Shown: one piece after another, positions 46,551 to 64,000 of the stretch
Layout: each line of letters starts with the position of its first letter
Position numbering within the stretch: position 1 is the first letter of the stretch
Sequence record: ON287376.1
Reading direction: 5' to 3' (one strand)
DNA length: 64,000 nt
Notes under the pieces: generated by a model
Told to the model about the DNA's origin: nothing
What the model saw: only the letters and a program-made list of their open reading frames with translations
Databases searched by the model: none
Position numbers and translations under genes: made by a program

Positions 46551-49500
46551 GTGTCTCTGACAATGAGTAACATTACTTATCCCGAACTCTATCAACGATT
46601 CGGTATACGTTCTACTTCGGGGTTAACTACCCCGAAACTGTTTAATCTGGAGAACTTCAAACTCCCTCGTGGAGCGATCGTTCACTACCTGCCTCAGTCG
46701 GTTTCCGATTTAGGCCCGGACGATCAGTTCTTCCCGATTATCAATGAACGTCTTCGTCCCTACGTAGACCAGGTTACCGATATGACCTCCCATGAAGGCG
46801 CTCCTCGCCGTCGTGGCGCCTTTAACGTAGAGAACCTGAAGCGCCAGTGGCTGATTCGTAATCGTCGCTACAGACGCGTTACAGACATCGCCAGAGCGTT
46901 AGACGATCGTCAAACTGCAATCGTTGTTAACTACGCTTTGATCCCGATGCAATGGAAATACCAACCGGTCCCAATGGCCCGCTGGTTCCGTTTCCAAAAC
47001 CTGATGAAGACGTTCGCTGACCGTGTCAAATATTTCGGTGAACAGTCTAGCCGTCCCCAGTTCCTCTTCCTTACTCTGCCGGATGTATTACCGTCACGTC
47101 AATACCTGAACGTATCGGTTGAGGCCTACGATGTAATTCAGGATGCCCGTCAGGCTCAGCAAAGTAATCTGCAGAGCCAACAAGGCGATACTATCGCACG
47201 GTACTACGATAACCTCTATCCGGGTATCATGACTGGCCAGGGTACTGCGTTCTCTAACGAGGCGTTTGATGCCAGTGCGTTAGGTTGGGGCGATGAACCT
47301 GCGTTCGAATCCTTCGATGAATCTTCACTCTCAATGGGTGATGATGATCCGATCGTAGCCGTTGAGTCGATGAACCGTATTCGCCTGGGTTACTTCCAAG
47401 ATGACGCGTCTCTGTTCCTTTCTGATCTTTGGAAGTGGATGTCAGAGAACCGCGATGAATCCATCCTGGGTTCCATCCCAAGTAACGCATTGAAGAACCT
47501 TAACCTGGTTGTCATGCGTAATGGTAAGTTCAGCCTGCTCTCCTTCGATAAACTTGACCAATGGGTTAAGTCGGAAGAGAACGAACGCGGTATCGGTTTC
47601 GGTTCAATGTCTCAGACGATGGATCGCTACTTGCAGAACATCGTGACGACGACTTCGGTATCCGACAAAATCACTGTTGAAGAAGAAGTTGCAGAAACTG
47701 GTGAAACGGAAGTCAGTGACATTAAAGTCCCTGAACCACAACCGGGTGACCCAGATGTAGATGTCAGCGTTGGTGACAAAGGCGAAAGCGACATCGGACG
47801 TCTTCGTCGTAGCGCTCAGCGCGTAACCAAAACTCCCCGTGAGATTTTGGCAACTAAGCGCAGCGAAACACCAATTCAAAATACCGACGTCACGGCGACC
47901 ACGAGTTTCCAACCCGAGGAAACTACTGTTGTAGTAGACAAGCCTACTCCGGGTAAATCGGAAGAGGAAGTCATCGATACCAACAACCCGTTGATCAAAC
48001 CGGTTGAAAAACGTTCCCGTGATCTCCTGAGTAAAGGGCTTATCTCAGGTAACGAGTTTAAACGTCACGTACGCCTCGCTAACAGCTTCAAGAGTATCAA
48101 AGCACCATTCGGTGAAGGTACTCTGGAAGACTTCATGAAGATCCCTCACGAGCAACTGTGGGACTTTAAAGCGAAAGAGATTCCGGACATCCCTCACGTG
48201 GTCGATAAGACCATGTTGAAGTCTACCTTACTGAACTACGACCAAGATTACATCAGTAATGTCTTCCAGAAAGATGTTGCAAACATGGTCGTCAGTTTAC
48301 AGAAGGCAGGTCTGGCAATTACGGATTATCGCGTCGAGAAGAAATCCGATGCGTTGAACGACCTCTACGACTACACGATTAAAGTCGTGCCGGTCTATGG
48401 TAGTCCTTCTACTATCCGCTTCCAATTACCGGCAGTGGATAAGAATGGTAAGTATCGCGTGAATGGCACTAAGTACTTCATGCGTAAACTTAAGTTCGAT
48501 AAACCAATCCGTAAGATCTCTCCGAGCATCGTGGCGTTGTCTACGTACTACGGTAAGCTCTTCGTTGAGCGCTCTTCGCGTGCAAGTGAAGATTTGGGCC
48601 ATGTCCTTGTTGACCTGATCGAAAGGTCTAGTCAGCTCGACGTCCCTGCCGTTACCGATTTGGTACTGGGCAATACATTCACCGAAGATCAAGACGTACC
48701 GCGCGAATATTCCGCATTGGCAAAAGAGTTCGTCTCCTTTGTACTGAATGGAATCCTGTTTACATTCGACTACCCTAACCTGGCGAATAACTACACGGAA
48801 GACGTCGTAGTGGCAGCTAAGGCGAAGGGCTGGGTTCCAGTTGGTCGCAAAGGTAAAGAGTTCATCTTCATGAATAATGAAGGTAAGCTCGTCGACGCTA
48901 AAGGTAATGTGTTAGGTTCTATCAACGAGATGTTGGGATTACCTGATGAGAAACTTCCGGTTGAGCAAGTGATCGTTAAGATCATGGGCGAAGAGATTCC
49001 GATGGCTGCGATCCTCATGTATCACATGGGCATCACTAAGTTGATGAACACTCTCCCAGTAAAACCAGAGCGTCGTGTTAAAGGCACTCGCGTCGAGCCT
49101 GTCCCAGGTACGTTCGAGTTAGTCTTTGCTGATGAAGTTTGGCGCTTCCCTGTCCACGGTGGTAATAGTAGTCTGATTTGGGCTTCCCTCCAACGTTGGA
49201 AGAAATACCTCCGTAGCTTCTCTGTACAAGAGCTGGACAATCCGGACACCTTTAACCTGCTGTTCGGTATGGCTAACCTGAGTGCGCGTTACGTGCGTGA
49301 GATCGACAACATCAATGCGTTGTTCTTAGATCCTATCGCTATTGACGTACTGCGCGATATGAAAGAACCGACCGAGTTGAACGACCTGTTCATCAAGGCA
49401 GCTTTCTATCTGGTGACCGATAACTATCCGAGTGATATTTCCTCAGACGGTTCTCTGTTCCGTGGTTACGAACGTATGCCTGGCGAAGTCTACCGTACTT

Positions 49501-49922
49501 TGTCCAACGCGTATCGTTCTTACGCCAGTCAGCCTGTTAGTTCCCGTGCAACTATCGATATCCCGCCGTTTGAAGTATTGGCGGCAATCCAACGTGACCC
49601 ATCCGTCGCCATCGTTGAGGATTCTAACCCAATCCACAACCTTAAAGAGAAAGAGAACGTAACTTACTCTGGTACAGGCGGTCGGTCTAAACGTGCAATG
49701 GTTCGTCGTACTCGTGCGTTCCATAAATCAGATATCGGTATTCGTGCAGAGGCATCGGTGGATAACGGTGACGTAGGGATTAACACATTCCTTACCGCTA
49801 ACCCTAACCTGACCTCGCTTCGCGGTACAGCAGTTCCAACTGTTGATCCGGATCCGAAGAACGGTGTCGGTAACCTTCTGAGTACGTCAGCGCTCGTAGC
49901 TCCATTTGCGACATACGACGAT
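46551..49922 (+). CDS. rpoB: Virion RNA polymerase beta subunit (phiKZ gp178-like), exon 1
   Basis: Beta motifs RGYER, TYSGTGG, RAFHKSDIGIRAEASVDNGDVG; homology breaks at APFATYDD; start may be ATG 46563. Confidence 0.88.
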
Positions 49923-51604
49923 CAATATTTACTTTAGTTCAATAGTATGACGATATAATTCGGAATGCTATTATGGAAAAGACAATACCGCCGTGGACAG
50001 AATCTTCCGTAGCAGGGTTTTACCTGATTGAAGGATTCTCCAGGTACGCGGTCAATGAAGAAGGTAAAATTCTCGATTTAAAGCGAGGAGTTGAAATCCC
50101 CGTTTATCGAGACAAAAAAGGATACCAGTACAACTCAGTAGTAACCGACTCAGGTAAACGAGTGCTCTATCAACATTACCGTTTGATGATGATAGCGATG
50201 TCAGATCGACCTGACAACTACCACGAGTTGGTGATAAATCACAAAGACAACATCCATGGTCACGATGAGTTAAGTAATCTAGAGTGGTGTACGGTTTTAG
50301 AGAACAATCGACACGCCATTTCCATCGGCGCTAAACGAGTTGATTTTACGGTCGCGCCCAGAAAGAAAGTAAAGGTCTTCTTAGTTAACACTAAAGAAGA
50401 GCTCGATTTCCCTTCAGCTCGTGCAGCATCGGAATACCTTGGAATATCCCCTAAGAGACTAGATCGAATTCTTTCTCTCGATCAACCTTTCTTCCGGGGA
50501 GAATATCTGATTAAGTTAGCAAACGACCCAACGCCTTGGAGAATAATCTCCAACGATGAACCGGTCTACAATGAGACAGGCAGAATCATCTTAGTTAGAG
50601 ATGTCTTTACCGGAGAAGTCACTGAGTGGCTTTCCATGTCTCAGTACGCTAACCATATCGGGTTGTCTAAAGATGCAATCGCTTGGAGATTGAAAGATAC
50701 GAAACAACGTGTCTATCCAGAGATGAAACAATACAAGTACAAAGGCGATAACTCTCCTTGGAGAGAATTGACCCATGAGGAGAAATCCGGACTGGTCAAA
50801 CATGGTCAAGCGAATAAGATCTTTGTTCGTGACCTAAACGCCAATGAAACGTTTGAGTTCAATAGCCAAACTGAAATGGCTAACGCTCTTGGAATCTCTG
50901 TGCCTACTGTAACACTTTGGTTATCGAAGAACATCTCGGATATCAAAGGTAGTCGGTATTTGATTCATCGTGGTTTGACTGAACCTAAGTGGCGTCATGT
51001 GGAATCAATAGCTAGGGAGCTAGCGAAGAATTCACGAGCCAAAAAGGTCGTTGTAGTCACTAATCGTGACGGTACTGAATCCACCTTCTTAAGTGCAGCA
51101 GAAGCGTGCCGAGTTTACAACATCGGAACCACTACTGCAAACTGGCGGTTAAAAACCAATGGAGAGAAAGTCTATCCGGATGGTACCCGCTGGCGTTATC
51201 TTTCCAATGACTGAAGTACGGGTCGCTTCTGGGAGTAATCCCAGTCGAATAACTTCCTTAATTGCGGGAACCCACTAAAGCCACACTGCTACAACGTAAC
51301 TGGAAACGGTAAGCGTGAATGCTCTAAAAAGTGTGTGGATGTACAATGGGGAATCGAGTTCGGTAACCAATCCGATCTTTCGCAGCGAAGCCTCTACCGT
51401 ATCGTAGATACCACGGGGAACGTTCAACGACTATCGCCGTCGGGCGAGTAGGGCCAAGTGGTGCGTGAAAACGCCTGTAACGAGTTTACAGCCGAAATAG
51501 GAAGTATCCTTGTAAAGAGGGTAATGATATAGTCTCGACATCTGAGGAAAGCTCAGAGCTGCATTAGCAGGCTTAGGAATAACGAACCTAAGTGAAGATT
51601 TCTG
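49923..51604 (+). ncRNA. Self-splicing group I intron (IA2-like), 1682 nt, homing endonuclease ORF in the P1 loop
   Basis: 5' exon ends in U, intron ends in G; P AATTGCGGGAA, Q-like TTTCGCAGC, R GTTCAACGACTA, S GATATAGTCT; P3 ACTTCCT/AGGAAGT; P7 GACTA/TAGTC; splicing gives in-frame YDD-PKRVSFISIQQSH. Confidence 0.9.
49973..51214 (+). mobile_element. Intron-encoded HNH homing endonuclease (NUMOD4-HNH plus four NUMOD1/IENR1-like repeats)
   Basis: FSRYAVNEEG N-terminus; INHKDNIHGHDELSNLEWCTVLENNRHA; repeats like F.S...A...LGIS. Confidence 0.9.
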
Positions 51605-52756
51605 CCAAAGCGAGTAAGTTTCATCTCTATTCAGCAATCTCACGTTATCGCTTCTAGTGACGCAATGGTTTCTCCTATCCGTACTGGGTACGAGCAAGTC
51701 ATGGCTCACCGTGTTGACGATACCTTCGCTACCGCGGCTAAAGGCCCAGGGGTAGTGACCGAGAAAGGCCCTAACTACATGGTCGTAAAATACGACGATG
51801 AGAAATTAGGTGAGGAGCGTATCCAATTAGGTCGTCGCTTCGGTGTGGTAACTGGTCACGTTGTTCCACACGCCGTAGTATCTGAACTGGAAGTGGGTAA
51901 GCGAGTAGTAGAAGGTGAGATCGTAAGTTACCATCCTGGGTTCTTCCAGCGCGACTGGCGCGACCCGACTCAGGTGCTGTGGAAGTCAGGTACTCTGGCC
52001 AACATCGCACTGATGGAAAACAACTCGACCTTTGAGGATGCGAGTCTGATCTCCGAATCACTCTCTAAACGTCTGCACACGCCGACTAGCCATACGCGTA
52101 CTATCTTGGTTAACTTTAACCAGGGTATCCGTAATCTGGTAGCGGTTGGCGAACATGTAGATAATGAAACGGTTCTCGGCTACATTGAGGATGAGGTTTC
52201 TTCTGCGAGTGATTTGTTCGACGAGTCCACTTTGGAAGCATTGAAACGTTTGGGTTCTCCAGCTCCGCGTGCTAAGTATGTAGGAGATATCGAGAAAATC
52301 GAGGTAATCTATTTCGGTGAGAAGGAAGACATGTCTCCTTCATTACGGAAAATTGCGGATTACTACGATAACCAACGCGCCAAGCTTTCTAAGGCTTTGG
52401 GTGGTACAGAAGCGAAGACTGGGCAGATTTTCACGCCTACGCGATTGGACGGTCTCTCTATTGAGATTGATATGATGGCGATTCGTATCTACATTACCCA
52501 TGACCGCTCTATGGGTGACGGGGACAAGATCGTGGTGGGTAACCAGAAAAAGTCCGTGGTGTCTGGAGTGTTCACTGGTAAGTGCCGTACTGTCGGCCCA
52601 GTGATTCCTGGCGATAAACCATGGGACGTTGATCTCCAGTTCTCGTACAAGTCTGTAAACGCACGTATCGTAAACTCCGCGATGATGTCGGGGATGGTTA
52701 ACATCCTTCTCCAGCACATTGCCACTGCGATGCTGAACGCTTACAACGAAGAGTAG
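51605..52756 (+). CDS. rpoB: Virion RNA polymerase beta subunit, exon 2
   Basis: PKRVSFISIQQSH (equivalent to ANRALMGANMQRQ), IRTGYE, FEDASLIS, GDGDKIVVGNQKKSV; in frame with the 51665 ORF; spliced product 1507 aa. Confidence 0.88.
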   Translation, partial: PKRVSFISIQQSHVIASSDAMVSPIRTGYEQVMAHRVDDTFATAAKGPGVVTEKGPNYMVVKYDDEKLGEERIQLGRRFGVVTGHVVPHAVVSELEVGKRVVEGEIVSYHPGFFQRDWRDPTQVLWKSGTLANIALMENNSTFEDASLISESLSKRLHTPTSHTRTILVNFNQGIRNLVAVGEHVDNETVLGYIEDEVSSASDLFDESTLEALKRLGSPAPRAKYVGDIEKIEVIYFGEKEDMSPSLRKIADYYDNQRAKLSKALGGTEAKTGQIFTPTRLDGLSIEIDMMAIRIYITHDRSMGDGDKIVVGNQKKSVVSGVFTGKCRTVGPVIPGDKPWDVDLQFSYKSVNARIVNSAMMSGMVNILLQHIATAMLNAYNEE

Positions 52757-55228: not shown

Positions 55229-55942
55229 ATGGACATCGAACTCGGGTTAATGGAGTACTTACTTAAGTTTCCTCCGTATGTCATTGAAGGTCTGGAGATT
55301 GACAAGTCGAATCCGGTCTTGCTCCACATCTCCCCAAACCCGAATATTCGAGAGTTCGTTCCTCGTCCAATTCAGCGGACGATGAAAGGAGAAGATGAAT
55401 ACGTCCCTCGTGTTTGCACGGGGGTCGGTTTACTGGATTGCCTACGCGGCTATGCCGTAGCGATTAACGACTTCCTTAAAAAAGAAGCCACTTGTGCAGG
55501 TGACGATGATTGGCTAGGTGGTTACACCATTTACGCCATCCCTAACGAGGTCGCTTTAAAGCCTAGTCCGCGTATGGCTCCTATCTCGAAGTGGTGTGAG
55601 GAAAGGTGGTTGGTTCCTTACGAGGGCCCTAACCAACCGTATATCCCTGAAGTCGTAGGGAAGTTCTTTATCAACGATGTTAAGTTGGAAGAGGACAGAA
55701 CTATCGTAACCGAGTTATTCTTACACGTCGAAAAAGAGCCGATGATCTTTGATCGTCATCTGACGTTATTTCCCGGTTATTGGAGAATTGTTATTCCTCA
55801 CCTTAACTCGTATTTCGAGGAGAGGTTTAAACGATCTGGTGTTGAAGTCAGTAAGTTGGATTCTAAAGAATTCACTGTCTCCAAGCAGAGCAAGGCGCAT
55901 TTACTTTCCTATGACGTTAATTCATTTATAAAGCGCTGGTGA
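55229..55942 (+). CDS. Hypothetical protein inserted between vRNAP and protease genes
   Basis: 237 aa; LLHIS..FVPR..GED..PRVC..LLDCLRG motif block. Confidence 0.6.
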   Translation: MDIELGLMEYLLKFPPYVIEGLEIDKSNPVLLHISPNPNIREFVPRPIQRTMKGEDEYVPRVCTGVGLLDCLRGYAVAINDFLKKEATCAGDDDWLGGYTIYAIPNEVALKPSPRMAPISKWCEERWLVPYEGPNQPYIPEVVGKFFINDVKLEEDRTIVTELFLHVEKEPMIFDRHLTLFPGYWRIVIPHLNSYFEERFKRSGVEVSKLDSKEFTVSKQSKAHLLSYDVNSFIKRW

Positions 55943-55949
55943 AGAAATC

Positions 55950-56699
55950 ATGGGATCTGTATTTGAAGTAACTGCCTTGAAAGGGGTAAACAAGGTAGGG
56001 GAGATCAAGCGCCTGGACAATAACTATCTCGAAGTTATTCTGGGTGCTCTGGAGTTCCCTAACAGTATTGGCGCAGTCTACGACATGGATCGTGCTATGC
56101 GGTTCTTCGAACCAGGTAGTATTTTCCAGCGCCGTATCGTACAGGGTTTCCTTCGTGGTGAATTAGGTCACCCGAAAGAATATAACTGCCGCGACTACCG
56201 TCAGTATGTGGAACGCATCCACACCATTGACGAAGGTAACTGGGCTATCCATATTCGTAAAGTAACTATCGTTCCTGGCTATCGTTTACCGAACGGTCAG
56301 GTTGTTACTGCGATTATCGGTGAAGTCTGTCCGACGGGTGTACATGCACCGGTTGTTGAACGTATCCTGGCTAACCCGGATGAGAATCTGGCATTCAGTA
56401 TTCGTTCGATGGCCACTGACCGTATCGTAGGTGGTAAACGTCGTAAGTATCTGGACAACGTGATTACGTTTGACGTGGTTAACGAACCAGGTATCTCGAT
56501 CGCTACCAAATACAATGCACCTGCATGTGAATCTATGGACCTGGCAGCAGTGTTCCCTGAGATTATTCGTAGCATGGTTAATGACACTGAGAAAGAAGTT
56601 GCTCTGGAAAGTTCTTTGGGACAGACCGTTGAAGCTATCCGTGCCATTGATCGCCGCGAATACGTGCGCAATCATTCGAGTGCCATTACTCGTTGGTAA
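55950..56699 (+). CDS. Prohead serine protease (phiKZ gp175 / SPN3US gp245-like)
   Basis: LRGELGHP (His), LAFSIRS (Ser), ITFDVVNEPG (Asp). Confidence 0.92.
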   Translation: MGSVFEVTALKGVNKVGEIKRLDNNYLEVILGALEFPNSIGAVYDMDRAMRFFEPGSIFQRRIVQGFLRGELGHPKEYNCRDYRQYVERIHTIDEGNWAIHIRKVTIVPGYRLPNGQVVTAIIGEVCPTGVHAPVVERILANPDENLAFSIRSMATDRIVGGKRRKYLDNVITFDVVNEPGISIATKYNAPACESMDLAAVFPEIIRSMVNDTEKEVALESSLGQTVEAIRAIDRREYVRNHSSAITRW

Positions 56700-61458: not shown

Positions 61459-63675
61459 ATGGCTAACTCAAGCTTAGGCAATCGTATTTCGGAACTCCCA
61501 CGTTCTACGAGATCGATCAACGATGCCGACTTAACCCCGATTTCTCAAATCAAAACCAACAATCCGGAAACCGTAGCGGCAACCGTCGGTGACATTCGTG
61601 CCACCTTGGATTTTGATAATGCTTATAATTCCATCCCAGAAGGCCTGGCAGGGACTTTCCCTGAAGAGCGCTTCTATGTTTACACCGATAACTCAAAACG
61701 CTTTGTAAACGGCTACATCAACAAAAACGGCGTATCTGAAGTTATCCTCGACAAATCAGGTCAACCTCGTCGCTGGGCTACCCCGCTCTATATGCTCGCT
61801 ATCGGTGAGCAATCTATCACAGTAGCTTCTGTTGACCAGATGCGTATCATGGCTCCGCAAGTTGACGGCCAAGTCGTACGTATGCGTAACTTCCGCCAGG
61901 GTAACGTTCAGTACAAAAACGGTGGCGATTGGGTTTACGACGCTAACGACAAAACCACCAAAGACGACGGCGTGATGTGTGTTGTTACCAACACCGGCGA
62001 ACGTTTCAAGCGTGACATCTCTAGCGGCTCTATCGAAACCGATTGGTTCTTCGACCCGGTAATGGATATCGCAGACTATAGTCTGACGCTGAACAAAGCC
62101 GCTGAGTGGGTGGAAGTAAAAGGTACTGAGTGGTGGCAGACCTGGTTACCAAGCACCCCAGCTTACATTACCATGGTAGGTCCTGGCGGTGTTCGTACCT
62201 GTAAGAAACCAGTATGGCTCCGTATGTGGGCCGTGAGCTGGGACTTCCGTGGTACTTTGCTGGACTTCACTGGAGGTGCTGTCGGTCAGACCAACGTCTC
62301 CGTAGTCTACGGTCACCGTAACTCTACACTGAGCAACCTGCGCATGTTATCCAGCGTAGCGTTGAAGCAGAAGGGTATCAACGTCTCAACGACTTCCGGT
62401 AACATTCACGGTCTGTCCGCAGCGTTCCTGAACTTCAACAACATCTCAATCAACCGTCACGACATTGCTTGGGATCTGGGCGATAACTGCTACCTGAACA
62501 ACTGGTTCCAGTGCACCACTCAAGGCTGCCGTCTGCCAATCAACGCACCTAAGTCTGCAAACGCCGGGGAAACTCTGGTATGGACTAAGTGTATCTTCGG
62601 TGACGGCATTGGCCCTTACCTGAACACAGGTATGTCGATGACCTTCCACGGTTGCTCGTTCGACTACTCCGGTTACAAAACCGAAGCTGACCAATTGGCT
62701 AATGCTGAGAAAGAAGGTTTATTCAATATCGATAACTGTACGGTTCTGATGTATGGTTGCGGTAACGAATATGGTAACTTGAACAGCCGGTGGTCAGGTC
62801 CAGTATGGAGAGGTACGGGTATTATCAAGCTCTACGAATGTCAGTGGATCTTGACTACTTCAAGTACAGTCGAACCTAACGAAACGACACCGCACTTGGT
62901 ACACAACTACTACTTCGAAGATACTTCTGCCGACCTGTCGTCCAAGGTCTATCTGGAAGGGTTCTACGTCCCTAACCCTGACTTGAACCGATTCTCCGGT
63001 AGTTGGACTAATGGCTGCTTCATCAAAGTCACTGAGTCTTATCCAGGTCGTTATAAGGACATGTGGCGTAACTACACGCTAGGTAAGGGAGCTAACATGT
63101 TAATCTCCCCTAACCCTAACAACGTTGGTTACTTGACCATCAACCGTCCTCGTTGCTCTGGCGGTACTGTGGTTTCTCCTACTGAGACTTCTCTGTTCAA
63201 AGTGACTACTAACGGCAACAAGTTAGTGATCACCAGTTCAGATACTACCAAGGCACCCAAGACCTTCAGTTTCTACACTAAGGGTAAAGCGGGTAACTGG
63301 TACGGTTCTCAGTTGACCGTTAACGGTAACCGTGACATGACCGATGTACGTATTGCAACTAACTGCTTCGGTGTAGTGGGTTACGTAGCTCAGGACAACA
63401 GCATCACCTCGTTGGGCGAGCAACGTCAAACTTGGAACGCCGGTCTTCAGGGTATTAAGACCACGCCTCAGACTACTCCAGGTATGCGCATGACGCAGTT
63501 GGGTACGAGTGAATACCTGCCACTTTGTCCTCCGGGTACCGAGTGGGTTCGTGTCTCTATCGAGATGACTAACTTTGGCATTGCAGCCGGTGAAGCTCCA
63601 GCGGTATTGGAAATCACTGACTTCTACGCTTGCGAAATTGGCATCTGTCGCGACACCAACCACCGCGTTTGGTAA
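61459..63675 (+). CDS. Tailspike / putative polysaccharide depolymerase
   Basis: RISELP N-terminal anchor; tailspike-N-like domain (SVDQMR..DGQVV..GGDWVYD..DDG..TGERFKR); Asn/Gly/Cys-rich beta-helix-like body; beta-sandwich-like C-terminus. Confidence 0.8.
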   Translation: MANSSLGNRISELPRSTRSINDADLTPISQIKTNNPETVAATVGDIRATLDFDNAYNSIPEGLAGTFPEERFYVYTDNSKRFVNGYINKNGVSEVILDKSGQPRRWATPLYMLAIGEQSITVASVDQMRIMAPQVDGQVVRMRNFRQGNVQYKNGGDWVYDANDKTTKDDGVMCVVTNTGERFKRDISSGSIETDWFFDPVMDIADYSLTLNKAAEWVEVKGTEWWQTWLPSTPAYITMVGPGGVRTCKKPVWLRMWAVSWDFRGTLLDFTGGAVGQTNVSVVYGHRNSTLSNLRMLSSVALKQKGINVSTTSGNIHGLSAAFLNFNNISINRHDIAWDLGDNCYLNNWFQCTTQGCRLPINAPKSANAGETLVWTKCIFGDGIGPYLNTGMSMTFHGCSFDYSGYKTEADQLANAEKEGLFNIDNCTVLMYGCGNEYGNLNSRWSGPVWRGTGIIKLYECQWILTTSSTVEPNETTPHLVHNYYFEDTSADLSSKVYLEGFYVPNPDLNRFSGSWTNGCFIKVTESYPGRYKDMWRNYTLGKGANMLISPNPNNVGYLTINRPRCSGGTVVSPTETSLFKVTTNGNKLVITSSDTTKAPKTFSFYTKGKAGNWYGSQLTVNGNRDMTDVRIATNCFGVVGYVAQDNSITSLGEQRQTWNAGLQGIKTTPQTTPGMRMTQLGTSEYLPLCPPGTEWVRVSIEMTNFGIAAGEAPAVLEITDFYACEIGICRDTNHRVW

Positions 63676-63680
63676 AATAG

Positions 63681-63705
63681 AGGAGAGGGCTTCGGCCCTC
63701 TCCTT
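63681..63705 (+). terminator. Hairpin with UUCG loop between tailspike genes
   Basis: AGGAGAGGGC-TTCG-GCCCTCTCCT-T. Confidence 0.75.
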
Positions 63706-63751
63706 ATATCGTTTCCTATGAAATCTAAACAGACTTTGTAAGGTAAATAAA

Positions 63752-64000
63752 ATGGTTGATCAGGTTAAAATATCTGAGCTCGGTAAGGCTACTGTTGTAC
63801 GGGAAAGTGATGTTATTCCTTTAAACAACACCACGACCAGAGGTCTTCCTATTACTAAAGGAGCCAGTGTTGACAACTTAAGAAGTTGTTTCAATTTTGA
63901 ACACGCCTTCTCAAGTGTAGACGAAGGTATTTCCAATACCAATTCTGATGAAGTATTCTACGTTTTTACTGACTCCAATAAAGTGATGGTCGGTAAATAT
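63752..64000 (+). CDS. Second tailspike paralog, 5' part only (runs off the window; not in the ORF track)
   Basis: MVDQVKISELGKATVVRESDVIPL..FNFEHAFSSVDEGISNTNSDEVFYVFTDSNK parallels RISELP..LDFDNAYNSIPEGLAGTFPEERFYVYTDNSK; AAGGT RBS. Confidence 0.8.
   Translation, partial: MVDQVKISELGKATVVRESDVIPLNNTTTRGLPITKGASVDNLRSCFNFEHAFSSVDEGISNTNSDEVFYVFTDSNKVMVGKY

Follow-up and report, generated by a model that had tools for sequence, protein, structure and literature searches.

A hairpin with an internal candidate late promoter suggests an expression switch for an intron endonuclease of Serratia phage Kodama

In phage T4, the ribosome site of intron endonucleases is masked by a hairpin, and an internal late promoter is present. 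Switches of this type occur with I-TevI (in the td intron), I-TevII, I-TevIII, segB and Aeh1 mobE. I-TevI also represses its own promoter through an operator that mimics the homing site. A second related system is PhiPA3 gp210 (Birkholz et al. 2024, PMC11620839), an intron HNH endonuclease in a virion-RNAP gene. Intron endonucleases such as gp210 are weapons in competition among co-infecting jumbo phages. The words promoter, hairpin and ribosome binding site are all absent from the gp210 paper (PMC11620839).

The phiKZ late promoter P119L consists of TATG with the G as +1, and has no upstream −10 or −35 elements (Yakunina 2015, PMC4666361; a structure paper of 2026, PMC12809450). In phiKZ, TATG is required but does not suffice for a promoter of the non-virion RNA polymerase (nvRNAP), and extra downstream determinants matter. 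The virion RNA polymerase (vRNAP) genes of phiKZ are middle genes, according to PMC4666361. An earlier note on the DNA described here took the T4 hairpin with its internal promoter and the phiKZ TATG core as premises; the first is correct and the second, including G as +1, matches published work.

We analyzed a 64,000-nt stretch (the window) of Serratia phage Kodama (ON287376.1), a giant phiKZ-like phage of the genus Moabitevirus. Unlike T4, Kodama is probably one of the phages that form a nucleus and thereby keep transcription apart from translation. Its virion-RNAP beta gene is split by an intron, with the following parts.

46551..49922, plus strand: exon 1 of the virion-RNAP beta gene, homologous to phiKZ gp178 and Moabite gp178; the last base is U49922
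49923..51604, plus strand: group I intron of 1,682 nt that splits the virion-RNAP beta gene, with its 3'-terminal G at 51604
51605..52756, plus strand: exon 2 of the virion-RNAP beta gene, for which the annotation in the record begins only at 51701
49919..49923, plus strand: 5' strand of P1 (CGAU/C), which pairs with the guide at 51221-51225 and places U49922-G51222 at the splice site
49931..49939, plus strand: 5' strand of the P1 extension, which pairs with 51209-51217
51209..51226, plus strand: P1-extension 3' strand (51209-17) with the internal guide sequence GGGUCGC (51220-26)

The intron borders were set by comparison with other alleles, namely that of Moabite, which has no intron, that of Yaphecito, which has the same intron with no ORF, and alleles that carry other endonucleases. 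In the intron-less Moabite allele, the junction reads GACGAT followed by CCGAAG. The record places the start of exon 1 at 46563, and exon 1 from that start joined to exon 2 encodes 1503 aa, equal to the length of the Moabite protein. A match to Rfam model RF00028 spans 51187-51558 with 46.4 bits and an E-value of 2e-9, under the gathering score of 50. The U-G pair at the 5' splice site and the terminal G51604 are both in place, and P1 covaries with that of 2050HW, where the exon sequence UGAU pairs with the guide GUCA. These features suggest that the Kodama intron is a self-splicing group I intron. In four RNA-type metagenome runs, coverage was zero over 49889-50009, the only matches were to the conserved intron cores of other organisms, and no read joined the two exons at this locus.

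In Yaphecito, the P1 extension folds into a 10-bp stem with a 4-nt loop, and it is this loop that the Kodama cassette occupies. The cassette consists of a 32-nt hairpin and an ORF for a 413-aa HNH endonuclease, and nothing more. Its features, together with an upstream stop codon, are as follows.

49935..49937, plus strand: TAG stop codon of the exon-1 frame on unspliced RNA, 3 nt 5' of the hairpin
49941..49972, plus strand: leader hairpin masking the translation-initiation region, the sole non-coding part of the cassette
49945..49954, plus strand: GTATGACGAT, a candidate operator mimicking the homing site, which overlaps the TATG
49946..49949, plus strand: TATG, a candidate core of a non-virion-RNAP late promoter, with G49949 as the would-be +1
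49961..49964, plus strand: weak Shine-Dalgarno-like CGGA, in part within the inner stem and the G-A loop
49973..51214, plus strand: HNH/NUMOD homing-endonuclease ORF of 413 aa, with its stop codon at 51212-14

The earlier note had proposed an intron endonuclease gene. Such a gene is indeed present: it is homologous to PhiPA3 gp210 and lies in a group I intron with borders known exactly from the intron-less allele. The protein has 28.6% identity to PhiPA3 gp210 (E-value 1e-18), and is also similar to phiKZ gp179 (E-value 8e-13). It contains the DNA-binding module NUMOD1 (E-value 2e-10), as expected of I-HmuI- or gp210-like HNH homing endonucleases, and a weak match to Pfam HNH_3 covers residues 85-113 (E-value 0.12-0.39). 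The insertion site is apparently the same as that of the gp210 intron, after GAT GAT, and in both phages a leader hairpin adjoins the ATG. The PhiPA3 leader differs in having no TATG and in that the exon-frame stop lies inside the hairpin loop. Scans of viral and metagenome contigs with degenerate patterns found no close relatives; close relatives were obtained via a protein-database route.

Like I-TevI, the Kodama endonuclease is encoded in a peripheral loop of the intron, and the 3' end of its ORF runs into ribozyme structure. The stop codon falls within the P1-extension 3' strand and precedes the guide sequence by 6 nt. The enzymes themselves differ, with HNH/NUMOD in Kodama and GIY-YIG in I-TevI. 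The Kodama intron resembles other ORF-bearing group I introns in its exact junction, the U-G pair at the 5' splice site, the terminal G and the existence of an ORF-less sister. However, its ORF is situated in the P1-extension loop, upstream of the whole catalytic core.

The leader hairpin has two outer arms, AATAGTAT (49941-48) and ATGCTATT (49965-72), that form 8 bp, including one G-U pair (U49946-G49967). Above them is an internal loop with tandem G-A/A-G (49949-50 versus 49963-64), and then an inner stem, in which CGA at 49951-53 pairs with UCG at 49960-62 and which is closed by the loop TATAAT. The stem ends at −1, so that it abuts the ATG at 49973. The arms with their coordinates, the inner stem with its loop, the partial covering of the CGGA and the position of the TATG in the 5' arm had all been described in the earlier note, and each agrees with our fold. 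More exactly, the 5' arm ends in the TAT, and G49949 is the first base left unpaired. As with I-TevI, a stable hairpin is predicted to hide the ribosome site on read-through transcripts.

The MFE of the hairpin is −12 kcal/mol (z = −3.56), and none of 200 dinucleotide shuffles is as stable. It ranks 12th among 328 Kodama gene leaders, and the leaders that outrank it are mostly terminators or belong to miscalled starts. In the homologous leaders, of which 4 are distinct, 44 of 44 cells are paired, with 3 compensatory double changes, 2 wobble changes and no broken pairs. By contrast, slid controls are only 25-48% paired and have no compensatory changes. Relatives at 51-56% identity have wholly different stems, yet these still adjoin the ATG. 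An equivalent hairpin occurs in all homologous cassettes found and in 8 of the 10 other endonuclease lineages at this locus. In 2050HW, Goslar, phiKp_32, EL, FishSpeaker, phiKZ and PhiPA3, it carries unrelated endonucleases, which likewise follow hairpins masking the Shine-Dalgarno sequence. Judging from these comparisons, the hairpin is real and is maintained by selection. We rejected the idea that it is a part of the ribozyme, given that the ORF-less Yaphecito intron does not have it.

The TATG could correspond to a promoter of the phiKZ type. In the Kodama genome, occurrences of TATG relative to start codons are most frequent at −50 to −21, and those of its reverse complement show no such peak. 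Within this zone, TATG occurs more often than any other of the 12 composition-matched permutations (45 occurrences versus 27 ± 4), whereas in the coding-dominated zone from −120 to −91 it is the rarest of the 12. Genes with an upstream TATG include capsid-operon, sheath, protease and tail-spike genes; no TATG lies upstream of the Kodama vRNAP, nvRNAP or early operons. On these statistics, TATG behaves as a selected start signal in Kodama. The similarity to P119L is that TATG occurs 21-50 nt upstream of late genes. The difference is that Kodama belongs to another genus, and for Moabitevirus it is only the statistics of the motif that point to promoter use. The likeness to I-TevI is a late-promoter element, in Kodama a candidate, positioned such that the transcript loses the 5' arm. 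However, the T4 promoter is TATAAATA and is used by the host RNAP with gp55, while the Kodama motif is only 4 nt, is located at the start site and would be recognized by the multisubunit RNAP that the phage itself encodes, which has no separable sigma factor.

One TATG taken alone does not reach significance, and its weight rests on its conserved position. Among 16 distinct leaders, 9 have a TATG with the G at −22 to −28, where 4-8% per leader is expected by chance (P about 2e-8), though this window was chosen after inspection of the data, and common descent may account for the TATG in some lineages. In those leaders, the TAT is usually the end of the 5' arm, and the G the first unpaired base. 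Goslar and 2050HW share the Kodama arrangement. TAT closes the 5' arm or directly follows it in 7 of 10 Kodama-family leaders, despite an identity of just 7-14 out of 32 positions. The TATG is missing from the close relatives P0006 and P0004, the latter having TATAG instead. The leaders of phiKZ gp179 and PhiPA3 gp210, both from Pseudomonas phages, have the hairpin and no TATG, although the promoter was defined in phiKZ. The extended context of the endonuclease TATG is middling, at the 91st percentile of random coding TATGs, and lacks the GGTT(C/T)C seen at the best sites in Kodama. We gave little weight to the extended promoter matrix, the top sites of which are upstream of tandem paralogous tail-spike genes. 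A mini-ORF starting at the ATG within TATG was rejected, since it has 1-6 codons, is unconserved and has no Shine-Dalgarno sequence.

A transcript starting at G49949 would have a 24-nt leader without the 5' arm. This truncation is predicted to lose 9.6 kcal/mol of structure, which ranks 2nd among 49 TATG leaders, and to raise the accessibility of the ribosome site from 0.36 to 0.67-0.75. Truncation is likewise predicted to unmask 13 of 13 TATG-bearing leaders.

In addition to the TATG, the 5' half of the hairpin contains what appears to be a copy of the homing site. Positions 49945-49954 match the 10 nt with which exon 1 ends in the Moabite (intron-less) and Totoro alleles at 10 out of 10 positions, and the copy ends exactly at the splice junction. 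A match of such length arose in 11 of 20,000 shuffles, and other leaders in the genome reach at most 7 nt. The copy is clear, and longer than TATG itself, only in the Kodama group. In I-TevI too, a copy of the homing site overlaps the late promoter, which in Kodama is a candidate. It is possible, by analogy with T4 I-TevI, that the Kodama copy is an operator bound by the endonuclease.

We propose that the hairpin is an expression switch, masked on long RNA and freed on a late nvRNAP transcript from G49949, and we estimate the probability of this reading at roughly 60%. The hairpin would form both on the long pre-mRNA and on the intron once it is excised, burying the weak Shine-Dalgarno-like sequence and the region up to the AUG. 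Because its initiation region is buried, the nuclease would not be translated from this RNA, and ribosomes would also be kept from the stop codon in the P1 extension, 6 nt from the guide. The non-virion RNA polymerase would start a second, short transcript at G49949. On this RNA the initiation region would be open because the 5' arm is absent, leading to a little endonuclease, late in infection. The endonuclease may then bind the 10-nt copy of its homing site and damp its own promoter, as I-TevI does. The sequence itself shows the anatomy, the hairpin's stability and covariation, the conserved place of TATG at the arm/loop boundary and its behavior as a start signal in this genome; the start at G49949, the timing, the difference in translation between long and short RNAs and the autorepression are our inferences. 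This model, which is that of the earlier note, is the best-supported reading; the evidence from the sequence supports it and leaves it unproven. A point against it is that nascent RNA and ribosomes do not come together when a phage forms a nucleus, which weakens the rationale known from T4, the protection of co-transcriptional folding.

The strongest competing explanation is that there is only a hairpin, and no internal promoter. The hairpin would then be a constitutive throttle that holds a potentially harmful nuclease at a trace level, with the trace protein coming from leaky initiation on the unspliced pre-mRNA or the excised intron, and TATG would be retained for another reason, e.g., as part of the homing-site copy or for a role at the RNA level. 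Such a throttle would account for the hairpins without TATG in P0004, P0006, phiKZ gp179, PhiPA3 gp210, HPP-Temi and FishSpeaker, and it fits the middling context score of the endonuclease TATG. It is also consistent with the fact that P0004 keeps the tandem G-A loop through coordinated changes on both sides, at the expense of the TATG. Nonetheless, it leaves unexplained why TATG is at the arm/loop boundary in 9 of 16 otherwise dissimilar leaders and why it is avoided elsewhere in the genome, and the homing-site copy extends past the TATG only in the Kodama group. We regard the throttle as unlikely. Translational coupling is improbable. In this scenario, ribosomes that translate exon 1 on unspliced RNA and stop at UAG 49935-37 would melt the 5' arm over its first few pairs, which would make the start site of the endonuclease accessible. 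The exon-frame stop is indeed 3 nt from the stem in Kodama, in the hairpin loop in PhiPA3 and in the 5' arm in phiKp_32. However, the distance from stop to stem varies (about 27 nt in 2050HW, about 20 in phiKZ and about 10 in Goslar), a ribosome that terminates there would get no further than the outer 3-5 pairs, and the unspliced RNA would have to be exported and translated.

A ribonuclease that cuts at or near UAUG at the arm/loop boundary would yield the same unmasked product, in the form of a translatable mRNA truncated at its 5' end, and would select for the same conserved position. We consider such processing very improbable: no such nuclease or motif is known in these phages, whereas TATG is a documented phiKZ promoter and, in Kodama, has the upstream-of-gene distribution expected for start sites. 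Finally, the stem could be a coincidence of AT-rich sequence, or the loop could be a different signal, in that it is a perfect TATAAT, which could serve as a −10 box for the host sigma-70, and one sigma-70-like match overlaps the region. A chance stem is excluded by the covariation and the shuffles. The loop is not conserved (ATAAAA in P0003, AATAAA in P0004), and the scan gave 1 site versus 0.7 expected, which moreover does not use the loop. With no −35 partner either, we rejected the loop as a −10 box, and we see almost no chance that coincidence or another such signal explains the leader.

A more ambitious form of the switch model is that all three layers of T4 I-TevI control have been rebuilt on TATG: the masking of the ribosome site, a late promoter within the masking structure, and an operator on this promoter that mimics the homing site. 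The polymerase would be the sigma-less multisubunit RNAP of the phage, the 32-nt module would spread with the ORF among chimalliviruses of enteric bacteria, and the intron RNA would be silenced in the cytoplasm. If such a module persists even though the phage keeps transcription and translation apart, intron RNA, unspliced or excised, would have to enter the cytoplasm and need silencing there. We view this extended form as doubtful.

If the switch model is true, selfish endonucleases converge on the same solution using two unrelated transcription machineries: a ribosome site that is silent on host transcripts, and their own late start inside the silencer. The finding also raises the question of whether intron-containing RNAs exit the phage nucleus. 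Since such endonucleases act as weapons between phages, their timing and dose matter for phage-phage interference and for phage engineering. The leader would also be a compact natural test case for nvRNAP promoters, and what a promoter needs beyond TATG would be easier to define with a module of 32 nt that functions across several genera.

The genome comparison also included nine paralogous endonucleases at other loci. The TATG arrangement is found in none of the nine, and masking hairpins precede two of them.

The earlier note proposed that the intron endonuclease of Kodama is controlled by a T4-like switch, in which a hairpin masks the ribosome site on the long RNA, while a short late RNA starting at G49949 is unmasked. 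This interpretation is supported as far as the sequence allows, and we put the probability of the full switch, i.e., a masked ribosome site with an internal late promoter, at about 0.6.

The window matches, at 100%, the record of the Serratia phage vB_SmaM-Kodama, a phiKZ-like member of the genus Moabitevirus with a 275-kb genome; adding 62,000 to a window coordinate gives the record coordinate. Its gene for the virion RNA polymerase (vRNAP) beta subunit is in two parts at the same locus as the endonuclease ORF. This gene has four states among relatives: it is uninterrupted in Moabite, has an intron without an ORF in Yaphecito, an intron with a different endonuclease in 2050HW, Haymo and ParM-25, and an intron with the Kodama endonuclease in Kodama and Totoro. 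Because the intron-less junction in Moabite reads GACGAT/CCGAAG, the borders of the Kodama intron can be fixed. The joined exons encode 1503 aa from the annotated start, the same as in Moabite.

Features of the locus (window coordinates, strand as presented)
46551-49937 and 51665-52756: ORFs of the two parts of the vRNAP beta gene
49922: U, end of exon 1, from the Moabite junction
49923-51604: intron, final base G, from the Moabite junction
49931-49939 with 51209-51217: P1 extension, 9-10 bp
49941-49972: leader hairpin
49945-49954: GTATGACGAT, homing-site copy
49946-49949: TATG, with G49949 at -24 from the start codon
49973-51214: endonuclease ORF, 413 aa
51187-51558: catalytic core of the intron
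51212-51214: endonuclease stop codon
51222-51225: guide sequence GUCG
51605: start of exon 2, from the Moabite junction

The catalytic core scores slightly below the Rfam gathering score (46.4 bits, E 2e-9). In P1, exon CGAU pairs with the guide sequence, and the pairing covaries in 2050HW (UGAU with GUCA). The P1 extension is capped by a 4-nt loop in Yaphecito; in Kodama, this loop is occupied by a cassette in which the 32-nt hairpin and the ORF are the sole components. The 3′ side of the P1 extension includes the endonuclease stop codon, which is 6 nt upstream of the guide sequence, and therefore a ribosome completing the ORF on unspliced RNA would open P1. The same reasoning has been documented for T4 td/I-TevI. 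The deposited annotation has no intron: each exon and the endonuclease is entered as a gene of its own, with exon 2 (KODAMA_01070) starting at 51701 and 51605-51700 thus missing. The Yaphecito intron differs in its 3′ region (L003:2820-2850), where simple alignment to Moabite would place its end at A, not G, before CCAAAGCG.

Domain hits in the endonuclease are NUMOD1 (E 2e-10) and, weakly, HNH_3. Its closest characterised relatives are phiKZ gp179 and PhiPA3 gp210, the latter an intron endonuclease with a demonstrated role in phage-phage competition (PMC11620839). A protein search found relatives with 83, 78, 75, 51-56 and 35% identity, whose contigs share the intron position.

All base positions claimed for the hairpin agree with the sequence. 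Its stem comprises 8 pairs, of which one is G-U, and ends at -1; a tandem G-A loop separates these pairs from a 3-bp inner stem, which is capped by a 6-nt loop. None of 200 shuffles folded as well (-12 kcal/mol, z -3.56), and the hairpin ranks among the most structured leaders genome-wide (n=328). In the alignable leaders (Kodama, Totoro and the relatives P0002, P0003 and P0004), 44 of 44 cells are paired, with compensatory double changes at three pairs and wobble changes at two; slid controls are 25-48% paired, with no compensatory changes. The compensatory changes and the shuffles exclude a chance origin of the stem. The TATAAT loop varies across these leaders, which removes a sigma-70 reading of it. 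Stems of the 51-56% relatives are very unlike that of Kodama (7-14 of 32 positions identical), yet adjoin the ATG. Other, non-homologous endonuclease leaders at the vRNAP locus also form hairpins, with a Shine-Dalgarno sequence in the 3′ arm (2050HW, Goslar, phiKp_32, EL, FishSpeaker, phiKZ gp179 and PhiPA3 gp210). It is well supported that the hairpin masks the ribosome site.

In P0004 (L044), both sides of the tandem G-A loop (49963-49964 with 49949-49950) are altered to A-G at once. This non-canonical covariation hints that the exact RNA geometry may matter, perhaps as a protein-binding site.

Late promoters of the phiKZ non-virion RNA polymerase (nvRNAP) are TATG, with G as +1, read by a beta-like subunit; any substitution is deleterious, and TATG is insufficient alone and frequent in the genome (PMC4666361, PMC12809450). 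The premise of a TATG core is therefore borne out within these limits, which led us to analyze TATG statistically in the entire Kodama record, using automatic gene calls. On the sense strand, TATG occurrence has a peak where the G is at -50 to -21 relative to the start codon (54 sites, versus ~5 per 10-nt bin farther upstream); across the record, no such peak was found for the reverse complement or related 4-mers. Among its 12 letter permutations, TATG is the commonest in the intergenic -50 to -21 zone (45 versus 27 +/- 4) and the rarest in the mostly coding -120 to -91 zone. It occurs upstream of capsid-operon, sheath, protease and tail-spike genes, and does not precede the vRNAP and nvRNAP operons or the tubulin gene. 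By these counts, any given TATG in the -50 to -21 zone has roughly even odds of being functional. The extended context of the endonuclease TATG is unremarkable, at the 91st percentile of coding TATGs under a matrix weighted towards the upstream regions of paralogues.

In a tandem set of six "AmsF-like" tail-spike genes (window 61459-64000 and record 125752-143349), GTT(C/T)C-TATG-AA..TAC lies ~33 nt upstream of each start codon. As late-promoter candidates, these sites are the strongest in the genome, and they may be similar through duplication. The prohead protease TATG (window 55914-55950, record 117914-117950; G at -37) reads TATGACGTTAATTC, resembling the endonuclease TATGACGATATAATTC, and the two may share a downstream promoter context.

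In the Kodama family, the 5′ arm ends in TAT, or TAT lies just past the arm, and G is unpaired. The G is at -24 to -28 in Kodama/Totoro, P0002, P0003, P0005, P0007, P0008/P0010 and P0011; exceptions are P0012 (TATG within the arm, G at -22), P0004 (TATAG instead) and P0006 (no TATG). Unrelated leaders carry TATG in the hairpin loop (2050HW, -25; Goslar, -26; phiKp_32, -24) or past the 5′ arm (EL, -38). With each lineage represented by a single leader, the G falls at -22 to -28, a window picked after the data were seen, in 9 of 16, versus 4-8% expected for each (P ~2e-8). TATG may be inherited by descent in some lineages, which would represent conservation inside leaders that are otherwise randomised.

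Where a leader has no TATG, the corresponding hairpin position often holds TATAG (L006:1135-1163, L007:1441-1479, L039 about 845-885, L044:47-78), as seen for phiKZ gp179, PhiPA3 gp210, a second PhiPA3 endonuclease, FishSpeaker and the metagenomic P0004. TATAG might serve as an alternative start signal or as a motif at the RNA level.

When RNA begins at the G of TATG, predicted structure drops from -10 to -22 kcal/mol to 0 to -5 kcal/mol (EL -9.5), and predicted ribosome-site accessibility rises from 0.09-0.45 to 0.49-0.98, in 13 of 13 TATG-bearing leaders. By structure lost, the endonuclease leader is second of 49 Kodama TATG leaders.

A hairpin acting purely as a throttle, with no promoter, would account for the TATG-less leaders, but leaves the positional conservation of TATG unexplained. 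RNA cleavage at UAUG, rather than initiation, would yield the same product as a start at G. Endonuclease translation could also be coupled to the exon-frame stop, but the geometry of this stop is not conserved: it lies 3 nt before the stem in Kodama and in the 5′ arm in phiKp_32. In PhiPA3, the exon-1-frame stop codon is inside the gp210 hairpin loop (L007:1459-1461), and therefore ribosomes on unspliced RNA would open the mask there, a geometry absent from Kodama.

The proposed switch would share its control logic with T4 I-TevI, I-TevII, I-TevIII and Aeh1 mobE. Relative to T4, its promoter type and polymerase, its probable nuclear compartment and the portability of the 32-nt module would be new. 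We found no account of such a switch in the searchable jumbo-phage literature.

In Moabite and Totoro, exon 1 ends in the same 10 nt as the homing-site copy, and the match stops exactly at the splice junction. A 10-nt match arose in 11 of 20,000 shuffles, and matches in all other leaders of the Kodama genome are 7 nt or shorter. Outside the Kodama group, only P0008 has a partial match (7/9). Autorepression of T4 I-TevI is mediated by an operator that resembles the homing site and overlaps the late promoter, a striking parallel to the copy over the Kodama TATG. By this analogy, the copy could add an autorepression operator, although we consider this additional layer unlikely.

Outside the window, Kodama carries another group I intron, which has no ORF (L013:790-1099, record 250790-251099) and scores 57 bits with RF00028, exceeding the gathering score. 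The unannotated gap that holds it follows the nvRNAP beta′ gene (KODAMA_02960), so introns occur in both phage RNA polymerases.
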